IMG/VR virus record: IMGVR_UViG_3300042545_001134
Location: 1 to 64,000 of that record
Reading direction: 5' to 3' (one strand)
DNA length: 64,000 nt
The notes under the pieces were generated by a model, which was not told the DNA's origin, did not search any database, and saw nothing but the letters and a program-made list of their open reading frames with translations. A program made the position numbers and the translations under genes. The first letter of the stretch is position 1, and every line of letters starts with the position of its first letter. Below, piece after piece: positions 1 through 9,957 of the stretch.

Positions 1-2
1 TT

Positions 3-140
3 GAAACACCTAACGGAGATTGGGACTTTATTGATAAAATGTACTTCAAGGGTAAAGAACTTCAGATGGACTTTAACCACCAAGAAACTCGAGGTAAGGC
101 ATTAACAATAGAACTTTGGACATTAGAGAATACCAAATAA
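3..140 (+). CDS. 3' end of a CDS entering from the left edge (hypothetical)
   Basis: Open frame from base 3 (ETPNGDWDF...LENTK) to TAA at 138-140. Confidence 0.6.
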   Translation, partial: ETPNGDWDFIDKMYFKGKELQMDFNHQETRGKALTIELWTLENTK

Positions 141-148
141 TTCTTTAA

Positions 149-222
149 GGACCCTTAGCTCAGTTGGTTAGAGCAACTGACTCATAATCAGTAGGTCACA
201 GGTTCGAGCCCTGTAGGGTCCA
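149..222 (+). tRNA. tRNA with CAT anticodon, most like tRNA-Ile2 (lysidine type)
   Basis: Acceptor GGACCCT/AGGGTCC, anticodon arm ACTGA-CTCATAA-TCAGT, T-loop GGTTCGAGCC. Confidence 0.9.
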
Positions 223-226
223 CACA

Positions 227-355
227 TGTGGTCGTACACTTAACTCCAATACCCGAAAGGGAAATCGTTATGTGAAGGCCACTCCCCTTGGTAGACCTTA
301 AAAAGGGCCCTTCCGTTGGTACGACAACGGCTCGCTGGGCCCGGGTCTACTTTTT
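227..355 (+). ncRNA. Candidate structured RNA(s) inside the tRNA cluster
   Basis: GC-rich nested stems GTGGTC/GGCCAC, CCC-GAAA-GGG, GTAGACC/GGTCTAC, GGGCCC/GGGCCC, CCGTTG/CAACGG, then a T-run. Confidence 0.45.
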
Positions 356-427
356 GCGAATATCGTATAGTGGTTATTACTCCATCCTTCCAAGTTGGAG
401 ACGACAGTTCGATTCTGTCTATTCGCT
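356..427 (+). tRNA. tRNA-Gly(TCC)
   Basis: Acceptor GCGAATA/TATTCGC, anticodon loop CTTCCAA, T-loop GTTCGATTC. Confidence 0.9.
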
Positions 428-432
428 CATAT

Positions 433-503
433 TATCCTCTCGTCTAATGGCAGGACCTCAGATTTTGATTCTGATTGTCGAGGTTCGAATCCTCGGGGGA
501 TAA
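433..503 (+). tRNA. tRNA-Gln(TTG)
   Basis: Acceptor TATCCTC/GGGGATA, anticodon arm TCAGA-TTTTGAT-TCTGA, T-arm CGAGG-TTCGAAT-CCTCG. Confidence 0.9.
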
Positions 504-516
504 CTAAAAACACAAT

Positions 517-605
517 GGAAGGTTACCCAAGTTGGTGAAGGGGGCAGTTTGCTAAATTGTTAGGGTGTCACAGCCGCGAGGGTTCGAGCCCCTCACCTTC
601 CGCCA
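517..605 (+). tRNA. tRNA-Ser(GCT)
   Basis: Acceptor GGAAGGT/ACCTTCC, loop TTGCTAA, long variable arm, encoded CCA. Confidence 0.92.
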
Positions 606-638
606 CATAAAAAATATACTTATGATAAACTAAAGGAC

Positions 639-1100
639 ATGAAAATTTTTAAGACATTACACGGAACACCGGTAAATGACATCATCAACTACATCAAAGA
701 TTACCTAAAAGGACGAGAAGACGTTGAACTATTAATTGGTTCAGACTCACAATCGTTTAGTAATTCTAAAACAGTGTATGGGGTTGTTATTGCTCTTTAC
801 ACAAAAGGAAAAGGTGCACACGTGTTATGTACTAAAGATACAACTCCTTTTGAAAAAGACACATCTAGTAGATTAATGACTGAGGTATGGAAGGCGGTAG
901 AAATTGCTGAGTTCCTTAGAGAAAATGGATTACCAAGGGCATCATGGATTGATATCGACTTGAATCCTGACCCAAGATATAAATCAAACAAAGTTCTAAG
1001 ACAGGCGGTTGGTTTAGTTGAAGGTATGGGTTATAGAGTTAGATATAAACATAACGGTGCAATGATAACCTATAGTGCGAACCACTTAGTAAGAATATAA
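639..1100 (+). CDS. RNase H-like protein, YkuK/DUF458 family
   Basis: Motifs LIGSDSQ, RLMTEVWKAVEIA, IDIDLN. Confidence 0.8.
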   Translation: MKIFKTLHGTPVNDIINYIKDYLKGREDVELLIGSDSQSFSNSKTVYGVVIALYTKGKGAHVLCTKDTTPFEKDTSSRLMTEVWKAVEIAEFLRENGLPRASWIDIDLNPDPRYKSNKVLRQAVGLVEGMGYRVRYKHNGAMITYSANHLVRI

Positions 1101-1528
1101 TGGAAAAGAACATCAACATAGTTAACAGACGTGCAAAATTCGAATATCATTTTATTGATACCCTCATTGCGGGGGTATCATTGAATGGTGTTGAAGTTAA
1201 GTTCATTAGGAAGGGACATTTAACTTTTACACCTGATTCGTTTTGTCATTTTCAAAATGGTGAACTGTTCTTAAAGAATGTTACCATATCGGGAATTGGT
1301 GATGATAACATGAAGAGAGATAGAAAATTGTTACTCAAGAAAAAAGAGTTGACTAAACTTAATAAAGAACTCACCAACGGTTTAACAATTATACCATATC
1401 GTTTATTTGAGAATGATAGAGGAATGTTTAAAGTTGAAGTGTGTCTTGCCAAAGGAAAAAAACTTCACGATAAACGTGAGACAATTAAAGAAAGAGATAT
1501 TCAAAGGGAAATAAAAAATTTCCACTAA
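1100..1528 (+). CDS. smpB: SsrA-binding protein SmpB
   Basis: NRRAKFEYHF, AGVSLNGVEVK, RDRKLLLKKKE, LAKGKKLHDKRETIKERD. Confidence 0.95.
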   Translation: MEKNINIVNRRAKFEYHFIDTLIAGVSLNGVEVKFIRKGHLTFTPDSFCHFQNGELFLKNVTISGIGDDNMKRDRKLLLKKKELTKLNKELTNGLTIIPYRLFENDRGMFKVEVCLAKGKKLHDKRETIKERDIQREIKNFH

Positions 1529-1632
1529 ATAATTCATTCTTTATGAATACGGAGAATATTTTCCACTAAAACCCCATTTTCGGTGATTATTTTCCATTAT
1601 AAAAAAATATTTTAAAAAAATTTACAAAAACA

Positions 1633-1663
1633 CTTGTTTTTTAAAATATATTATGTACCTTTG
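1633..1663 (+). promoter_or_regulatory. Bacteroidota sigma70-type promoter
   Basis: (C)TTG-N19-TACCTTTG upstream of the 690-aa gene. Confidence 0.7.
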
Positions 1664-1689
1664 TATTACAACAATTAATTACGACATTT

Positions 1690-3762
1690 ATGACGACAAG
1701 AAATTTAGTTTCCTTTCAGAAGGGTTTGGTATGTTCACCAAACGACGGTCAAGATAATAGAATCGCAGTGGCGACCGTTCAATCTCACTTAATGGAGTGG
1801 GGTTATATGTTAGACGAAGATGCATTCTTCGCATTATCCAAATCAGATTTATCGTTCATAGAGAACTTCAACAACGAAGTCGTTACACATTTGAAAAATG
1901 TAATGGGAGGTAATCGTAATTACCAACCTTTATATAAAAACTTCCCACAAGAAGTTATGTCAATGTCTGATTTCGAATTGTATATTAATGCAATTACCCA
2001 CTATTGGAGTAACGGTACTTGGGAACCATCTACCCATACTTTTGAAAAAGAAATCAAGTTTGAGAAAATCAAATACAACTTGATTAAGTATGGCACATCG
2101 GAAAGATTTTCACAAATCTTCACTGATTTGGTTTCAATTAATACATCATTGACACCTCAAGACCTTGAGATTGTTAAATGGTTCGTTAACAGTGGTGAAA
2201 CATTAGTATTCCCTAATACAATTCCATTCAAAGAGAATTTGTGTACATTGGCGGCAATGGGAATTGAGGGATTACCAGTTAAGACATCAACTGACGTGTT
2301 AAGAATCGCCGTTCATCTTTCAGGTGGAGACATCAGTTTACCTAAAGTTCCTGAAAAGGAAATTAGATTAAACAGATGGTCATCTGCAAAGGGTGAGAAC
2401 CCTGAAAGAGAAAAGTTTAAATTCAAGAAGTTCACTCGTAAAGAGAGACGTTACATCTTGGGTTTACTTGAGAACACAAACTGTGACCCACGTGAAATGG
2501 TTTTAAAAGACCAACGTTGGATTCGTTTAGGTGAAATATTACATCCAGGTGAATATAAAAATCAATTCCCAAAATCTTTTGATGCATTCAATAAGATTAG
2601 AAACGAGAAAGTAAAATCTTGGTTCTCACTTGTTAATGAAGGTTTCAATAAAGGTCTTGAGAATGGTTTGAGAGTATTGTCTCAAAAACCCGGTGAATTC
2701 GCAAGAAGAATCGATTGGTTGGTTCGTACATATCCAAAAGATATCGAAGTAATCATGACACACTTCAGCGAAACGGTAAAAGGTACATCGAACAAAGTAT
2801 TGTTTGAAGTTTACGCTCACTTTGAAAATCGTACTGAACCTATGGATAATAGGTCCGTTATGATAAAGGGGTCAAGAAAACGTACCATGTTACCATCACT
2901 ACCAGCAATCCCTAAAGAGATTGTGGAAACCATCCACTCTAAATTATTTGAAACACTTAGAGATAAGTTTTCAGTAATGGATTCTTTGGGTAACTGTTGG
3001 ATTGATGAGGAATTGAAAAAGATTCCTTTACCAACCAACATGAGAAGTATGAACTTTTCAACTAAACCAACAATCAGAGGTCAAAGAGTTCCACTCGATA
3101 ACCCTGATGCAAAAGTTATCAGACCTTTCATTCATTGGATGGATAAACATGGTAGTGAAGATTTGGATTTAAGTGTTACGTTTGTTGGTGAAAAAGTGTC
3201 AGATGTATTATCTTTCAGTAACTTGAGAGTTGGTGAATCTGTTCACTCGGGGGACGTGAGACACAGACAGGGTCCTTGTGCTGAGTACATCGACATTGAT
3301 ATGGAAGATGCATTGAACCGTGGATACAAATATGTAGTCATTGACGTGAGAAACTTCAATGGTGGTAGTTTGAATTCACTTGAAACATCTTTTGGTATCA
3401 TGGAGAGAGAACACCCCGAATCAAATAAAACATGGTTACCTGAGACAATTTCAAATTGTCAATCATTGGGGTCAACGTCGTCAAACACTTTGATTTCAAT
3501 CATTGACCTTGAAACCAAGGAGTATATCATGTTGGATATAGATTCAGAAGGTTTTGTAACCGCAAGAAGTGACTTCAAAAACACCCTTAAAGTAATTCAA
3601 CAATACGCTGAGTTACCAAAAGTAAGTGTTTACGACCTTATTCTTCTACACGTAGAAGGAAGAGGTAAACAAGTTACCCTTGACGAGAATGTGGATACAC
3701 ATTTTAAGTACGAGGACTTCTGTTACTCTTATGAAGAGACAGGAAAATTGATGGGTGTGTAA
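1690..3762 (+). CDS. Large helical-repeat protein with C-terminal TerD-like domain (resembles the MXAN_6230/SCO0854-type family)
   Basis: KPGEFARRIDWLVR, DLDLSVTF, HSGDVRH..AEYIDID motifs; family assignment from memory. Confidence 0.6.
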   Translation: MTTRNLVSFQKGLVCSPNDGQDNRIAVATVQSHLMEWGYMLDEDAFFALSKSDLSFIENFNNEVVTHLKNVMGGNRNYQPLYKNFPQEVMSMSDFELYINAITHYWSNGTWEPSTHTFEKEIKFEKIKYNLIKYGTSERFSQIFTDLVSINTSLTPQDLEIVKWFVNSGETLVFPNTIPFKENLCTLAAMGIEGLPVKTSTDVLRIAVHLSGGDISLPKVPEKEIRLNRWSSAKGENPEREKFKFKKFTRKERRYILGLLENTNCDPREMVLKDQRWIRLGEILHPGEYKNQFPKSFDAFNKIRNEKVKSWFSLVNEGFNKGLENGLRVLSQKPGEFARRIDWLVRTYPKDIEVIMTHFSETVKGTSNKVLFEVYAHFENRTEPMDNRSVMIKGSRKRTMLPSLPAIPKEIVETIHSKLFETLRDKFSVMDSLGNCWIDEELKKIPLPTNMRSMNFSTKPTIRGQRVPLDNPDAKVIRPFIHWMDKHGSEDLDLSVTFVGEKVSDVLSFSNLRVGESVHSGDVRHRQGPCAEYIDIDMEDALNRGYKYVVIDVRNFNGGSLNSLETSFGIMEREHPESNKTWLPETISNCQSLGSTSSNTLISIIDLETKEYIMLDIDSEGFVTARSDFKNTLKVIQQYAELPKVSVYDLILLHVEGRGKQVTLDENVDTHFKYEDFCYSYEETGKLMGV

Positions 3763-3789
3763 ATCACCTGTCAGTTCTTTGAAATATTA

Positions 3790-4100
3790 ATGTGGCTATG
3801 TGAGTCACTGAGAGGATAACCTTTACCTATTATAGGTGACCACGTAGTGGTACTATCTTAGGTCTTAGAGAAGGTGAAAGTATCGGTGCAAATGTCTTAC
3901 TTCTAACATACAAAAATCAGATACAACGTTAGACACACAATTCTCCACATAAACTTATTGACGGCTATGTACCGGGTTACTTCTACAAAACAATTGGATG
4001 TTAAACCACCCGTACTCTTTCCGTCTACCTTATTACCGGCTATGAGTGTAGTTACTTCTAAACCTATCTAAATGAAAAAACCACTCGTTCAATTTCCGGT
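3790..4100 (+). ncRNA. Three tandem homologous structured RNA units (GGCTATG...TTACTTCTA)
   Basis: Units at 3790-3950, 3961-4024 and 4035-4100 keep the same loop sequences with different, compensatory stems. Confidence 0.7.
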
Positions 4101-4140
4101 ATATTTTATTAACAATAACAATAATTTAAAAACAACAATT

Positions 4141-4590
4141 ATGACAACATCAAAAACAACAGATGAAAAAGTAAAAGAACTATTCGACTTAGTTCAATCA
4201 AAAAAATTAGCAATTGAAAAGGCTGAAAGACCTTGCTGGAAAACAAGTGGTAATTTCGGTTACTCAGCAAATTCAGCACATGACAGAACGTCTATCCCAA
4301 CGGTAACAGACACTCGTAAAATCGTTGAAATGTTCGCATTTCTAATCGATAGAAAAGATAAATCTGAATCTGCAGCAAAAGAACTTGGTGTGGACTATAA
4401 TTTTACTTGGTTAGGATTCGGTGTTGATGAGTGGAAAGAAGATTTTCAAACTCGTGTAAACCAAATCTCAGTCCAAGAAAAACGTAAGGAACTTGCCGAA
4501 TTAGAATCTCGTTTGAATGCAATTATCTCACCTGAGTTAAAGGCACAAATGGAACTTGAGGCAATCGCCAAACTTTTAGAGAATAACTAA
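4141..4590 (+). CDS. Hypothetical coiled-coil protein
   Basis: ORF 4072..4590; likely start MTTSK at 4141 after an A-rich leader. Confidence 0.8.
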   Translation: MTTSKTTDEKVKELFDLVQSKKLAIEKAERPCWKTSGNFGYSANSAHDRTSIPTVTDTRKIVEMFAFLIDRKDKSESAAKELGVDYNFTWLGFGVDEWKEDFQTRVNQISVQEKRKELAELESRLNAIISPELKAQMELEAIAKLLENN

Positions 4591-4651
4591 AAGTGTTTTT
4601 CTTAGTTTAGTAAAACTAAGTGGTGGAGTCGACTTCGGTCAGCACCCGAAA

Positions 4652-4684
4652 GGGGGGTTGGATTTGTCTAACCTCCTTTTTTTT
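4652..4684 (+). terminator. Rho-independent terminator
   Basis: GGGGGGTTGGA/TCTAACCTCC stem plus T-run. Confidence 0.7.
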
Positions 4685-4711
4685 ATCAAATATTTTTTAT
4701 ATCTTTATATC

Positions 4712-5470
4712 ATGAGAATTGTATGTATATCGGATACTCACGGACTCCATAAAAAAATGGAGTTTTTTAACCCATTACCTGAAGGTGATATTTTAATTCA
4801 CGCGGGTGACTGTACCAATGTTGGTAAACCTCATGAGGTTAAAGAATTTGTTGAGTGGTTTCAAAACGTAAAAGGATTTGAAACAAAAATCTTTATTGCG
4901 GGAAACCATGATTGGTCATTCCAAAAAGTTAATGAACCCCACCACTCAGGTGATTATGATTGGTTCCGTCATTTAATCAATGAAGAGAATCTATCCCAAT
5001 CTGATGTGACATATTTAGAGGACACCAATTTTACAATTGAAAGTTCAGAGTTTTCAAAACCAATAAAAATCCACGGTAGTCCATGGCAACCTAATTTTTA
5101 TGATTGGGCATTTAACCTACCAAGATTGGGTGATGAGATTAAAAGTAAATGGGATATGATTCCCGATGATACCGATATTTTAATCACACACGGTCCACCA
5201 CATGAAATCAGAGATTTTGTCAGTAATTGGAGACAAGGTGATAGGAACGTTGGGTGTGAATTATTGAGGTATGAATTGGATAATAGAATCAATCCACTAA
5301 TACATGTGTTTGGACATATCCACGGTGCATACGGTGCCACATACATTAAAGATACTCTTTATGTGAACGCATCAACCTGCACAGAAGGATACGTACCATC
5401 AAATAAACCAATCGTTATTGACGTAACAGAGAATGACGGTAAATTAATCGCAACGTATGTCGAAATATAA
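4712..5470 (+). CDS. Metallophosphoesterase (calcineurin-like)
   Basis: ISDTHG, HAGD, IAGNHD, ITHGPP, FGHIH motifs. Confidence 0.9.
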   Translation: MRIVCISDTHGLHKKMEFFNPLPEGDILIHAGDCTNVGKPHEVKEFVEWFQNVKGFETKIFIAGNHDWSFQKVNEPHHSGDYDWFRHLINEENLSQSDVTYLEDTNFTIESSEFSKPIKIHGSPWQPNFYDWAFNLPRLGDEIKSKWDMIPDDTDILITHGPPHEIRDFVSNWRQGDRNVGCELLRYELDNRINPLIHVFGHIHGAYGATYIKDTLYVNASTCTEGYVPSNKPIVIDVTENDGKLIATYVEI

Positions 5471-6134
5471 TGAACCGATAACAGTAGTAATCTCAACAAG
5501 AAAAATTGATGAGAACTATGTTAAACAAACAAAGAAGAGTTTTTCTCACCCAAAGACACAGGTATTAATTTACGAAAATAATGGTGAATTCTCACTACCT
5601 CAACTTTATAATAAAGGTTTGGATGAATCGGTAAACGATGTTGTGGTTTTCATGCATGATGACATTGATATTGAAACTACCGGTGTAACCAATAAACTTT
5701 TAAGACTTTTTGATACACATCCCGAACATGGAATTATTGGACTTGCGGGTACTGATGATTTGGTGAGTGGTATGTGGTGGCAAAAAAGAGAAAGGATGTA
5801 TGGACAGGTTAAACACGAACATCTTGGTAAGGTACATCGTAATAACTATTCTGGAACGTTTGGAGACGGTTTAAAGGATGTTGTGATTGTCGATGGGTTA
5901 TTTATCGCAGTACACAAGAAAAGGATTGTGGAGAGGTTTGATGAGGAGTTTCCGGGGTTTCACTTCTATGACACACCATTCTGTGTTTTAAACCACTTAA
6001 AAGGGGTTAAAATAGGTGTTACAACTAAAATATTGGTTGTACATAAGTCAGTTGGTGCGGTAGATAAGAAATGGGAAAAGAATAGGTTATTCTTCGAGGC
6101 AAAGTATGGTCACAATCTACCCTTGACTATTTAA
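5457..6134 (+). CDS. Glycosyltransferase family 2-like protein
   Basis: YNKG, VFMHDD, VDGLFIAV, FDE..FHFYD. Confidence 0.85.
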   Translation: MSKYNEPITVVISTRKIDENYVKQTKKSFSHPKTQVLIYENNGEFSLPQLYNKGLDESVNDVVVFMHDDIDIETTGVTNKLLRLFDTHPEHGIIGLAGTDDLVSGMWWQKRERMYGQVKHEHLGKVHRNNYSGTFGDGLKDVVIVDGLFIAVHKKRIVERFDEEFPGFHFYDTPFCVLNHLKGVKIGVTTKILVVHKSVGAVDKKWEKNRLFFEAKYGHNLPLTI

Positions 6135-6178
6135 TGTATCTGACGTATATTTTATTATATTTATAAAAAAAACCACTT

Positions 6179-6415
6179 ATGAAGAAATTAATTGAAATCG
6201 TAAAACAATTCTTAGGTCTTGGAAAAACAGCAAAGGCCATAACCACAGTAACTCAACTAAACAACGAGGTTAAAGAAGCAATCGTTGAAGTTAAGGAAAA
6301 GGTAGAAGAAGTAAAAAAGAAAACAAGATATTATTCTAAACCAAAATCAAAACCATCTGTAGAAACTACTACAGAAAAAAAATCAAAAAAACCGAACAAA
6401 CCTAAACAACAATAA
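6179..6415 (+). CDS. Small basic hypothetical protein
   Basis: ORF preceded by TATTTATA (6158-6165). Confidence 0.7.
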   Translation: MKKLIEIVKQFLGLGKTAKAITTVTQLNNEVKEAIVEVKEKVEEVKKKTRYYSKPKSKPSVETTTEKKSKKPNKPKQQ

Positions 6416-6450
6416 AAAAGTTTACTTACCTTTGTATCGTAATATACAAT

Positions 6451-6857
6451 GGGGATGAATGGAATTGATTGGCGTTGGTATTGTACGTGGGCACGTAGTC
6501 GGATGTCATCTACGACTTAAATAAATGGTGGTAACAATTAGACGGCAACGTTTACAACAACATGGAAGTAGCTGGTTTACTAGCAACTTCTAAGGTGGCA
6601 GCCTAACCGCTCCCACTGGACGGGTCGATGGACATATAACCTTGGAACAGAAGTCCTCACGGTGTGGTACCTACCCAAAAAGGTACAAATGGTCTCGTTC
6701 AGAGTGCTACCATAAAAAAAGTGAACTCGACACAGTTTCTGATAACGATGTCAAAATAGGAATCAGATATTTGTCGGTTGTGAATAATCGAATAAACGTG
6801 TAGTCCATTTATGGTATGGCGAACAAGACGAGGGTTCAAATCCCTCCATCTCCACCA
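6451..6857 (+). ncRNA. ssrA: tmRNA; tag (A)GNVYNNMEVAGLLATSKVAA
   Basis: 5' GGGGATGAATGG, 3' T-arm GGTTCAAATCC and acceptor CATCTCCACCA, tag ORF 6544-6606, TACCTTTG promoter upstream. Confidence 0.95.
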
Positions 6858-6863
6858 AAAAAG

Positions 6864-6888
6864 AAACCCCTCAAAAGAGGGGTTTTTT
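6864..6888 (+). terminator. Terminator after ssrA
   Basis: AAACCCCTC-AAAA-GAGGGGTTTTTT. Confidence 0.8.
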
Positions 6889-6892
6889 ATTT

Positions 6893-7378
6893 TTATTTTA
6901 CTACTGTTTGACTTGGGTCGGATAAATTTTGAATGTAAGCGTCAATTAATCTACTAACGGCTTCGGGTTTTTCGTCAGCCTTAAATTTTACTTTAATTTT
7001 AGCCAAACCCGACCTGTCCGTATTCTTACCTGAATCCACCTCAATGCCTTTAATATTGTGTTCATACCCCTGTTTCTTAAATAACCCCAAAAGGGACCTC
7101 TTTAAATCTGAAACATTGGTTTCATCTTCACCAAATATTAATCTGGCTTCAAATTCAATATCTAATTCATCTAAACCAATAGATGAATGGTCCGCCAATA
7201 TGTATAGAGGTACAACTAATTCCCTCTCCCCAATATAGAACGTTTTTACTTTAGGTGTACCGTCTTCATTGAAGTAGTTTCTTAATGAATTAATATGTTG
7301 TCTTTCACTTATACCTTGAGCGACCATTGCCGCTTCCAATAGACCACCAACAAGTTCCTCAATGTTCAATCTAGCCAT
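6893..7378 (-). CDS. DUF2589-family protein
   Basis: VPLYILADHSSIGLDELDIEFE pattern; tandem with the next gene. Confidence 0.65.
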   Translation of the reverse strand: MARLNIEELVGGLLEAAMVAQGISERQHINSLRNYFNEDGTPKVKTFYIGERELVVPLYILADHSSIGLDELDIEFEARLIFGEDETNVSDLKRSLLGLFKKQGYEHNIKGIEVDSGKNTDRSGLAKIKVKFKADEKPEAVSRLIDAYIQNLSDPSQTVVK

Positions 7379-7435
7379 TTATAATTTTTTATGTTACTAA
7401 TATAACATAATTTTTTGACTAAATCAAGTCATTAA

Positions 7436-8032
7436 TTATTTACTTGGGTCAACTGTAAGTGGAATTAAAGATGGCTCTAACATTTGTGTCAAATAGTCAG
7501 ACAATTTCAACATACCTTCAGTTGGAGGTAATTGTTCTGCATGAACTTTAACTTCATATTTTGCTGAGTTATCTGTACTTCTTGTGTTTTCTTTGTGGGT
7601 TGCCACTTTACCCGCAACTGTTGCGTTAAATTTCATACCCCACCAACTTGCAGATGCTGAAGCCGAATAAGAAGATTCACTGTCAGAACTTTCTTTACTT
7701 GTTTCAGATGTCTTAACTTCCATTGTAAATGCAATGTCAGCCGATGTAATTGCCAAAGAAGGTAATGGAACTAATGGTAACATTGGAACTTTATTATACA
7801 ATTTTTGTATTTCTTGTTCACCAGTTTCTCCGTTAGTAACAACCCTGTTCATTTCAACATCTAATGAACGAGCGGTTGTTTTACCGTCTTTATCTTTTTC
7901 AAATGCAACTTCAGAGATGTATCTCCAAGTTACTTCATTTAATTTTGCTTGACCTTTTGCCATTCCGACAATAGGTGAAACAATCAAATCTTCGATTGGA
8001 AGACCTGCGAAATTGTCTGCGATTCCTGCCAT
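7436..8032 (-). CDS. DUF2589-family protein
   Basis: FAGLPIEDLI..P, VPMLPLVPLPSLAI, STDNSAKYEVKVHAEQ. Confidence 0.75.
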   Translation of the reverse strand: MAGIADNFAGLPIEDLIVSPIVGMAKGQAKLNEVTWRYISEVAFEKDKDGKTTARSLDVEMNRVVTNGETGEQEIQKLYNKVPMLPLVPLPSLAITSADIAFTMEVKTSETSKESSDSESSYSASASASWWGMKFNATVAGKVATHKENTRSTDNSAKYEVKVHAEQLPPTEGMLKLSDYLTQMLEPSLIPLTVDPSK

Positions 8033-8090
8033 AGTTTTTTTTTTAATTTGTTTTTATTACTTATAAATACAAAGAAGTTTATTAAAAGGA

Positions 8091-8294
8091 CTAGTCAAAC
8101 TTTGCCATCCCTTTGTATCTGGTTTTAATTTTTTTTATTTCCCCCATGGCCTCATTATATGATTTTTTGATATCTTCATTGACCGTGAAATCGAGTACAG
8201 TTTCACACCTGGGACACGCTGAAACGGGATGTTTAATAATAAATTCTAATGTTAACCCAAGAGGGGTTTTACACATTGGGCAAGGTAATGACAT
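8091..8294 (-). CDS. Small zinc-ribbon protein
   Basis: CPMC...CPRC. Confidence 0.7.
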   Translation of the reverse strand: MSLPCPMCKTPLGLTLEFIIKHPVSACPRCETVLDFTVNEDIKKSYNEAMGEIKKIKTRYKGMAKFD

Positions 8295-8538
8295 AATCTA
8301 AAATATAGGGATACTAATAGAGAATATAAAGGGTATTCGTAATTGGGTACCCCTATAACGAACAAAGGAGTCAATTAAGACCCCTTCGCCGAGATGTGGA
8401 TACCTCCTTTCGTTTTTAGTTTTAGTTATCGTTTACGGGCGACCAAACCAATAAACTCTATTAATAAATATCCAAAAAAAAAGAGTTAGTAACTAAACTA
8501 ACCCTTTTTTTAAAATTTATTTTAAATATTTTTTAATC

Positions 8539-9957
8539 TTATTTTTTCCATTTGTATTTCATTGTGATATCTTCGTCACCCCTGTCACCAGTTTCTCTTT
8601 GTCTAACTTCAGTGTAACCTTTTTCTTCCAATGATTTACTTAAAATGTAGTAGTCAGGTCCACTCAATTTAGGTCCTTTCCATACAACTACTTTTCCCCC
8701 TCTTCTTACAACCAAATTGTTACTCGATAAAAGTTCTTGTAATTTATTTTTATCCATTACAGGTTCCGCCGGTACCGGTGGAGGTGTAATTGGAGGAAGT
8801 GTTGAACCCGTAGTTGTTCCTGTTAATGTGGTTGTACTACCTGTTGTTGTTCCTGTGGTAGCAGCAACCGGTGGTGCCGGAACAACAGTTGTTCCTTTAC
8901 ATTTGGCAATGATTGCATCATACGTTTCTTTTGTTAATTCTTTCGAACCACCAAGAGCAACCATTGTCTTAGGTCCAAAGTTACCTGTTTGTAAATCCTG
9001 AGACATACCTAAACAAGATTGGACTTCTCTAATTTGGTCACTACTACATCCATATGCCATTGGGAATGATGTACACGGTGTGTATTTAGTTGAACTTCCA
9101 CCGCCAGTGTTTCCACCACCAGTGTTTCCACCACCACCTTGTGTTCCATCATTTCCATCTGGGTCTAACACCACAACCGCTTCATTCGGATACATTTTAC
9201 CGATTAAGTAAAGAACCGCAGCACCTGTGATACCCAATACCGCCAATGTTTTCCATTGACCTCGAGATAAACTAAACACTTTAATGTTACTTTGACCTAA
9301 AGATTTTGCATCCGCACTAAGAAGTTGACCACCTTTTACAATGTTAACTTTACCACCTTTTACTTTACTAAGAAGTGCCGCCCCTTGTTTACCTTCACCA
9401 ACTAATTTTAAGTTGGTTTTAAGTAATGTGGTTGCTTTGTTATATTTTATCTTATCTAACGCTGCGATGGACTTAGTAATCTGTGAGGTTTTCTGACCCA
9501 TTTTCACTACCTTAGCACCTTTTAAATTATCAATATTACCAACTATTTGTTTACCTGCAGTTTGTAATTCTTTTTTAATAACATCATCTAAACTTTTACT
9601 TGCCTCTTTAATAAGGGTTTGTTTTTCAGCTGCAACTAACTGTTTATAAGTTTTACCGAATTTTTTAATCGCCAAATCCTCAACTAAAACCGATAAACTT
9701 CTTTTATAACCCGGAGCGGCTCTAATTGCCGTCAATGAAACTTGTTTAGAGTTTGATTTTGCTAACGTACCAACAACCTTACTAATTTCTTCCGATGCGT
9801 ATTGTAATACTTTAGCGTCAGATGACCTAAATATATTTTTTAAACCTGTAAGAACACTCTTACCAAATCTAGCCAAAAATGCGCCAATTCCGGCAAATTC
9901 ATCTACCTGTTGCGGTGTGGTTTCCATTTCTTTATTTTCCATTTCTTTATATTCCAT
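8539..9957 (-). CDS. Putative virion protein with TM segment, Gly/Thr linker and peptidoglycan-binding-like segment
   Basis: LAVLGITGAAVLYLIG; QIREVQSCLG..GNFGPKT. Confidence 0.6.
   Translation of the reverse strand: MEYKEMENKEMETTPQQVDEFAGIGAFLARFGKSVLTGLKNIFRSSDAKVLQYASEEISKVVGTLAKSNSKQVSLTAIRAAPGYKRSLSVLVEDLAIKKFGKTYKQLVAAEKQTLIKEASKSLDDVIKKELQTAGKQIVGNIDNLKGAKVVKMGQKTSQITKSIAALDKIKYNKATTLLKTNLKLVGEGKQGAALLSKVKGGKVNIVKGGQLLSADAKSLGQSNIKVFSLSRGQWKTLAVLGITGAAVLYLIGKMYPNEAVVVLDPDGNDGTQGGGGNTGGGNTGGGSSTKYTPCTSFPMAYGCSSDQIREVQSCLGMSQDLQTGNFGPKTMVALGGSKELTKETYDAIIAKCKGTTVVPAPPVAATTGTTTGSTTTLTGTTTGSTLPPITPPPVPAEPVMDKNKLQELLSSNNLVVRRGGKVVVWKGPKLSGPDYYILSKSLEEKGYTEVRQRETGDRGDEDITMKYKWKK

Follow-up and report, generated by a model that had tools for sequence, protein, structure and literature searches.

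The locus between positions 1690 and 4686 of a 64,000-nucleotide (nt) stretch of virus DNA (positions 1 to 64,000 of IMG/VR record IMGVR_UViG_3300042545_001134, hereafter the window) was analyzed, and a gene for a 690-amino-acid (aa) protein, P0001 (1690-3762, + strand), was found to be paired with an array of small structured RNA units directly downstream. Comparison of homologous loci showed that this linkage of gene and RNA is exclusive and ancient, and with moderate confidence we propose a new family of ribonucleoproteins, organized like the Ro60/Y-RNA particle, as the product of the locus. That P0001 binds the RNAs encoded next to it is our inference, drawn from how exclusively the two are linked, from their architecture and from the gene neighborhoods. 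The protein would recognize a defined part of these RNAs, and the particle might serve in RNA quality control, repair or counter-defense. The family is widespread, occurring on chromosomes of Actinomycetota as well as in large phages whose hosts span at least four phyla.

RNA units and their linkage to the gene

A sequence-only reading of this DNA had described a 690-aa open reading frame (ORF), a structured spacer carrying an RNA triplet, a 149-aa ORF, hairpins and a terminator, and all of these elements were found where it had placed them. The spacer of 378 nt (3763-4140, + strand) held no credible ORF; in the ORF scan, none of at least 40 aa was present on the + strand except an upstream extension of the next gene. 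The triplet turned out to be three homologous structured units on the + strand, named A, B and C, and the string GGCTATG-N-TTACTTCTA was present twice against 0.00 copies expected. Unit B (3960-4025, 66 nt) and unit C (4035-4100, 66 nt) were matched by R1, the covariance model used for the phage and metagenome searches, with 67.7 bits (E 1e-14) and 60.8 bits (E 6e-13), respectively, and unit A (3791-3949) gave a partial R1 match at 3886-3942.

From 5' to 3', the unit was composed of P1, a joiner CUAY, P2, a large terminal loop and a joiner NNUUY. P1 had 5 bp and invariably ended in GG/CC, and P2 had 4 bp, a 1-nt bulge and another 4 bp, with the last pair using the first U of UUACUUCUA. The terminal loop started with UACUUCUA, the general form being U(U/C)(A/C)CUUCU. 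In unit B, P1 was GACGG/CCGUC, the first joiner was CUAU, P2 contained its 1-nt bulge, the loop started with UACUUCUA and the second joiner was UCUUU; unit C, with ACCGG/CCGGU as P1, was built in the same way. Unit A, which contained P1 (UGUGG/CCACA), CUAU, P2 and GUCUUACUUCUA, had the canonical form except that the 5' strand of P2 was extended by a branched insertion of about 90 nt; this reading was backed by 17 covarying pairs in an alignment of 14 homologues.

The evidence for RNA structure was comparative, not thermodynamic. Single-sequence folding gave z scores of -2.18 for unit B and -3.02 for unit C, and the folding energy of the whole spacer was not significant by itself (z = -0.58). 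When 33 short units, taken from this phage and from relatives, were tested for covariation, 96.7% of the cells were able to pair, compared with 35-50% when the partners were slid; 127 cells were doubly changed, and compensatory changes occurred in 10 of the 13 pairs. The same structure was obtained on model-fitted alignments of 49 and of 82 matches. The mean column identity among the units was 55%, with only the core motif in common. These results showed, on the strength of covariation, that the predicted secondary structure of the units is real. No Rfam family was matched at permissive thresholds in positions 1-9000 of the window, in four phage loci or in six actinobacterial loci, and the units represent a new structured RNA class absent from Rfam (Rfam 15).

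A leader motif, AGTTCTTTGAAATATT (3773-3788, + strand), precedes unit A and is conserved in relatives; it recurred between some of the units in the arrays of relatives and occurred exactly once in the 64-kb window. The motif (TTT)AGTTCTTTGAAAATATT was seen at 3773-3788 of the window and between units in loci L005, L016, L018 and L019, in each case just ahead of a unit, and may mark a processing site or act as a promoter for individual units. The idea that AGTTCTTTGA serves as a promoter throughout the phage genome was rejected, since the 64 kb contained it exactly only once and had 13 matches with one mismatch where 8.7 were expected.

Homologues of the gene kept the RNA motif alongside, and the condition under which the sequence-only reading would have been refuted, a general lack of the motif beside homologous genes, was thus clearly contradicted. 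In close viral contigs, with 72-91% protein identity, the array was located downstream of the gene in all 24 cases, and each array carried 1-7 TTACTTCT core anchors. Beside distant homologues (22-37% identity), R1 detected units in 10 of 13 phage and metagenome loci, including Xanthomonas phages XacN1 and Xoo-sp13, Rhodococcus phage Weasels2, Ruegeria phage RpAliso, Rhodobacter phage RcXuper, an unannotated human-fecal 'Bacteriophage sp.' record, an uncultured 485-kb phage and two metagenome contigs; the match beside the gene of Lactobacillus phage LpeD was weak. All 49 strong R1 matches were located in the array by the gene and on the strand of the gene, although 204 kb of loci had been searched, and the three units were the sole significant matches in the phage's own 310-kb genome.

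A second model, R2, was used for actinobacterial loci. The scan took one genome per species and gave 44 loci, including those of Rhodococcus, Amycolatopsis, Kutzneria, Nonomuraea, Microbispora, Streptosporangium and Streptomyces. One or two units were detected 20-300 nt past the stop codon in all 44 loci, and no units were found elsewhere in the 283 kb of these loci. When three whole genomes (33.5 Mb) were searched, all five matches at E <= 0.01 lay within 1.6 kb of a family gene. No conserved protein neighbor was found in the 44 loci, and the top neighbor 'clusters' were discarded as spurious frames over the RNA or the gene start. In the actinobacterial loci, the RNA is the only constant companion of the protein. 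Units were also located by bacterial homologues in Kibdelosporangium and in Pleionea, where they were on the opposite strand, and by the gene of a protein fused to a RING domain.

Further elements were observed at some of these loci. In Nonomuraea, a thiamine pyrophosphate riboswitch (64 bits) directly follows the RNA unit (L058:3736-3831) and belongs to the next gene, and in a relative a group I intron (RF00028, 65.8 bits) is located about 2 kb downstream of the array (L005:8742-8956). Behind the gene of one RING-fused bacterial homologue (L045:4753-9702), three proteins are encoded, the first of 468 aa, the next with a CHAT protease domain and the last longer than 1600 aa, and this may be a conflict-system neighborhood.

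Protein P0001 and its family

P0001 belongs to phrog_33734, to which no function is assigned in PHROGs. It had no match in Pfam, in a PDB sequence search or in PADLOC, and its gene had no match in a DNA-level search of a phage collection. The family comprised 2441 representatives at 50% clustering, 1028 of which scored at E <= 1e-30. An AlphaFold2 model, based on a 75-sequence alignment, was obtained with a predicted local distance difference test (pLDDT) score of 94.6 and a predicted template modeling (pTM) score of 0.90. In the model, residues ~1-470 were all-helical, residues ~473-639 formed a beta-sandwich, and helices followed at the C terminus. The C-terminal domain (473-639) of the model had the TerD beta-sandwich fold, and a comparison of the family profile with the PDB placed its D-x-D and S-G-D motifs on the corresponding motifs in TerD (E 0.065). 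In this way, the model together with the fold and profile comparisons upheld the earlier description of the large protein as helical and TerD-like. The invariant residues of the family were G38, R205, R339, D493, S520, G521, D522, E532, G569 and D606, among which D493, S520-G521-D522, E532 and D606 occupied the acidic TerD-motif positions. The predicted TerD-fold domain probably binds Ca2+. Against Pfam TerD (PF02342) itself, P0001 was below threshold, and neither a nuclease fold nor a match to a nuclease family was found in it.

The TerD proteins of known structure (PDB 3ibz, 2kxt, 2qz7) resemble P0001 in fold and in acidic motifs matching DxD and GD. Stand-alone TerD has about 190 aa and occurs in Ter operons, whereas P0001 fuses TerD to a helical domain of 470 aa and is linked to RNA, not to ter genes. 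Residues 308-671 of P0001 were homologous to NCBIfam NF041916, the MXAN_6230/SCO0854 RING family, at E 6e-70 with 236 bits, far below the equivalog cut-off of 600 bits. P0001 had no RING domain, whereas the true NF041916 member P0301 has Prok-RING_4. The 44 actinobacterial 'TerD family' proteins resemble the phage protein in lacking Prok-RING_4, and at least one RING-fused member has a unit at its 5' edge. In an atlas fold search, the helical fold of P0001 was also found in actinobacterial 'TerD family' and RING proteins. No description of the function of NF041916 was found in the literature searched.

Likeness to Ro60, tRNA mimicry and competing explanations

A ribonucleoprotein is the best-supported explanation of the locus; an account of the units as decoys, as cis-regulatory elements or as part of a module like type III toxin-antitoxin systems fits less well. 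In the mechanism that we propose, the helical solenoid and TerD domain of P0001 would bind the small RNAs encoded alongside. The recognition element would be the invariant core, in which P1 ending in GG/CC and the bulged P2 flank the internal loop of CUAY and NNUUY and are joined by the single-stranded (U)UACUUCU. The effector would be the terminal loop, which varies between units from a plain loop to a hairpin like an anticodon arm, a T-arm or even a permuted tRNA, and its tRNA mimicry would tether or gate enzymes that handle tRNA or other RNA, with the CCA-adding enzyme, RtcB ligase, phosphoesterase, exoribonucleases and anticodon nucleases as candidates.

Ro60 and its Y RNAs or YrlA, phage Ro60-Yrl particles included, have been described (PMC4201824; PMC12135203). 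Both systems have a large helical-repeat protein with a C-terminal domain of metal-binding type, and one to several adjacent small RNAs with a closing stem, interrupted by an internal loop and a bulge, and a large loop. Some of the partner RNAs carry a tRNA-like module in YrlA order, and both systems occur in bacteria and large phages, near RtcB and tRNA genes. They differ in that Ro60, a HEAT-repeat ring closed by a vWA domain with a MIDAS site, has this vWA domain where P0001 has the TerD beta-sandwich, in that the Ro-binding helix has no relation to the core GG-CUAY ... UACUUCU ... UUUCC, and in that the arrays of the present family reach about 8 units. The longest co-linear structural alignments to the helical domain were those of three Ro60 entries, with 221-316 residues: 1yvp_A from Xenopus (316 and 268), 9l5y_B from Thermus phage phiLo (287 and 221) and 2nvo_A from Deinococcus (305 and 251). 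By Z, the likeness was within noise despite these long alignments. These results suggested that the likeness of P0001 to Ro60 is architectural and, as judged from the predicted structure, ambiguous.

The genes around the phage modules were also compared. In the window, the module sits in an island of translation-maintenance genes (tRNAs, SmpB, tmRNA and metallophosphoesterase), and tRNAs and tmRNA were likewise found beside it in the human-fecal 'Bacteriophage sp.' record. The Weasels2 module adjoins a tRNA cluster and RtcB, and genes for a CCA-adding enzyme or tRNA nucleotidyltransferase were located near the module in XacN1, Xoo-sp13, RpAliso, RcXuper and one metagenome contig. Ro60 systems have an rsr-yrlBA-rtcBA arrangement, which is echoed by these phage neighborhoods with their RtcB and tRNA-handling genes.

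Mimicry of tRNA was detected in the variable loops of the units. Within its terminal loop, the third Weasels2 unit has a T-arm, followed by a closed acceptor-like hairpin and then a D-arm, which is the order of YrlA (PMC4201824). Against the Rfam YrlA model, this part scored 26.4 bits, the best value anywhere, compared with a gathering score of 69. No match to Y_RNA or YrlA (RF00019, RF02553) was obtained in positions 1-9000 of the window at E <= 1 or in six actinobacterial loci. A T-arm of the form GG-UUCGAAU-CC with a neighboring hairpin was found in loops of phage arrays of Bacteroidota type, and also in Actinobacteria, where it was in the second unit, which has about 90 nt. Hairpins with a 7-nt loop were present in 34 of 156 units, compared with 4.3 +/- 2.1 in shuffles, and comprised T-loops as well as, in seven phage units, CUUUUAA/C loops resembling those of anticodon arms. 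Several relatives had a tRNA-like gene that was complete but for its anticodon arm, which was replaced by a further unit.

This tRNA-like gene (L012:6693-6820, L005 at about 6795-6910, and in L015, L017 and L019; absent from the window) has an acceptor stem, D-arm and T-arm, with a long hairpin and a truncated CUAU...UUACUU unit in place of the anticodon arm. It was called neither by ARAGORN nor by the Rfam tRNA model, and its fold had a z score of -2.93. In XacN1, another tRNA-like gene with a CCA end (GCGACGG...CCGUUGCACCA) lies between two units (L002:3659-3733), has its own TTGACA-N17-TATAAT promoter, and was neither called by ARAGORN nor annotated. A tRNA with anticodon CUA, of the amber-suppressor type (ARAGORN 'Pyl'), was located just upstream of the gene in relatives (L012:3813-3885, L015:3834-3908, L017:3312-3386, L019:1012-1084 and L022:3572-3643), a hint that TAG may be reassigned or suppressed in these phages; none was among the five tRNA/tmRNA calls of the window.

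Such mimicry might also be explained if the RNAs were decoys or substrates made of tRNA parts, which soak up host anticodon nucleases or tRNA-modifying enzymes without a stable particle, with the protein as a processing or chaperone factor. The loops would then mimic T-arms or anticodon arms, the latter often as CUUUUAA, like tRNA-Lys UUU. Hairpins with a 7-nt CU-NNN-R-N loop were indeed enriched, with the 'anticodon' UUU in 7 distinct units, and the phage loci lie within tRNA islands. However, anticodon-like hairpins were confined to some phage units and were lacking in the actinobacterial and in many other phage units, and the invariant part was the core of P1, joiner, P2 and CUUCU, not the mimic. 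An invariant core points to a common binding partner, and the one gene that is always present is that of this protein. Decoys without a particle are therefore considered unlikely.

The relation of the array to transcription of the gene bears on another explanation. Metatranscriptome contigs from four lake runs covered the P0001 gene, and parts of the array were covered in two of these runs, by a contig at 3568-4027, which bridges the 3' end of the gene and units A and B, and by a contig at 3841-4039 with zero differences to the window. The bridging contig suggested that gene and array are in one operon, and the RNA-library contigs are suggestive of expression of both. The same contig would be expected if the units were cis-regulatory elements of the protein's own mRNA, either autoregulatory sites or riboswitch-like leaders or trailers, and so would the constant position directly beside the gene and the actinobacterial units that start 20-30 nt past the stop codon, which a terminator can follow. 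However, the units may be upstream, downstream or, in Pleionea, on the opposite strand, and a locus may have a single copy or as many as about 8. The XacN1 array, which precedes the gene, has its own terminator at the end, and unit 1 and the adjacent tRNA-like gene are each preceded by a TTGACA-N17-TATAAT-like promoter. T-arms or a whole permuted tRNA, as found in some units, would be needless for a cis operator. Cis-regulation is accordingly judged to be quite unlikely.

Very improbable is a type III toxin-antitoxin-like (ToxIN-like) or abortive-infection module, in which the tandem RNAs would neutralize the adjacent protein and be processed by it, with the phage copies as anti-defense mimics. 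Such a module would share with our locus the ToxI/ToxN-like layout of tandem structured RNAs adjoining a protein gene and could draw on the RING-fused bacterial relatives, one of them beside a CHAT protease gene. It is at odds with units that are strongly diverged and covarying rather than near-identical repeats, with a single unit in many bacteria, with a 690-aa protein that, unlike the small endoribonuclease toxin of such systems, has neither an RNase fold nor a nuclease family match, and with the lack of any PADLOC match for phage or bacterial family members.

Several results weigh against a Ro60-like ribonucleoprotein. With filters off, no unit was found in Mycobacterium phage WXIN or Salicola phage SCTP-2, and none was found in one short metagenome contig with a homologue. 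The Streptomyces RING-fused homologue gave only a marginal unit match (E 0.097), and the actinobacterial loci were without RNA-repair neighbors. The contigs from RNA libraries show presence only, without ends, strand or level, and may include carried-over DNA. TROVE (PF05731) was absent from P0001 and from 75 N-terminal domains of the family at E <= 1 in the Pfam search, and hhalign gave a probability of 0.2% for the family profile against a TROVE alignment of low diversity (20 sequences, Bxz1 Ro and 19 relatives, at 57-77% identity). Membership of P0001 in TROVE was ruled out at the sequence level by these two comparisons. The 310-kb phage genome had no PF05731 match anywhere, whereas control genomes and phage Bxz1 matched. 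At the Streptomyces RING_SCO0854 gene, the marginal unit is upstream (L042:4897-4960), and an RNase_T-family exonuclease with a BRCT domain is encoded downstream (L042:7668-8669).

The analogy to Ro60 and Y RNA that the sequence-only reading had drawn was strengthened by YrlA-like mimicry and by the tRNA and RNA-repair islands of the phages; it was not supported by any TROVE sequence or by a fold likeness above noise. Its suggestion that the module acts against RNA-damaging defenses of the host is speculation, and the data can be explained without a counter-defense role, since actinobacterial chromosomes, too, carry the module, there with no conserved neighbor gene. A survey of jumbo phages mentioned only stand-alone TerD and canonical ROT/TROVE proteins (PMC7824862). 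Neither this RNA nor its pairing with the protein was described in the literature on TerD, TROVE, Y RNA, SCO0854 and RNA motifs that was searched; much of the subscription literature lay outside it, and a prior mention is possible. It is a possibility, rated somewhat below even, that the system was invented independently and is not a diverged Ro60, which would make it a second class of bacterial and phage ribonucleoprotein with a helical-TerD scaffold and 'CUUCU-loop' RNAs, in which tRNA mimicry arose by convergence.

Setting of the locus and implications

The source record is a virus genome of 310,691 bp, 93% complete, and by its size and completeness it is a jumbo phage. DNA nearly identical to the window was present in many lake-water metagenomes. 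Upstream of the module, four tRNAs (149-605), a gene for an RNase H-like protein (PF04308, 639-1100) and the SmpB gene (1100-1528) were located. A putative promoter of Bacteroidota type, TTG (1634) ... TAccTTTG (1657-1664, + strand), precedes the 690-aa gene; the pair at 1634-1664 was fitted by eye to TTG/TAnnTTTG, which we take to be the Bacteroidota promoter consensus.

Downstream of the array, a 149-aa protein, P0002, is encoded at 4141-4590 (+ strand), and its ATG agrees with the start in relatives. P0002 is a member of phrog_2574, with no function assigned in PHROGs; it matched no Pfam or NCBIfam family, and in the atlas it fell in viral hypothetical clusters only. The sequence-only reading had counted it as a component of the operon. 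As a third component it was rejected, with homologues in Bacillus and Synechococcus phages whose records had no match to P0001, and by this distribution P0002 is a neighbor in this phage lineage, outside the conserved system. Behind it, 3' hairpins and an intrinsic terminator occupy 4601-4686 (+ strand): a GAC-UUCG-GUC hairpin at about 4630-4641, CCC-GAAA-GGG at about 4645-4654, and, at 4648-4686, a long hairpin with U8 behind it. The fold of 4590-4690 had -32.4 kcal/mol (z = -3.75), and the hairpin-U8 terminator at 4648-4686 was not in the list of a simple terminator scan.

The genes that follow encode a metallophosphoesterase (4712-5470) and a glycosyltransferase-like protein (5457-6134), and a tmRNA (6451-6857) with the tag GNVYNNMEVAGLLATSKVAA comes next. 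With SmpB and tmRNA, the phage has its own full trans-translation pair. The 8-mer ACUUCUAA was common to the tag region of the tmRNA and the core of the RNA units; this is probably a coincidence, since actinobacterial units show the same degree of conservation in the core. Just beyond the tmRNA, the - strand encodes a pair of adjacent DUF2589 (PF11655) paralogues (6893-8032).

If the proposal is right, the locus would belong to a second widespread family of particles made of a dedicated protein and tRNA-mimicking small RNAs, a list that so far consists essentially of Ro60/Y RNA. The obligatory RNA partner would be the first functional handle on a large orphan protein family, some of whose members are annotated only as 'TerD family' or 'RING_SCO0854'. 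Culturable carriers are available in phages Weasels2 and XacN1, in the Ruegeria and Rhodobacter phages, and in strains of Rhodococcus, Streptomyces and Nonomuraea. The role of TerD outside Ter operons would become testable, and so would the purpose of the tRNA and tmRNA islands of jumbo phages.

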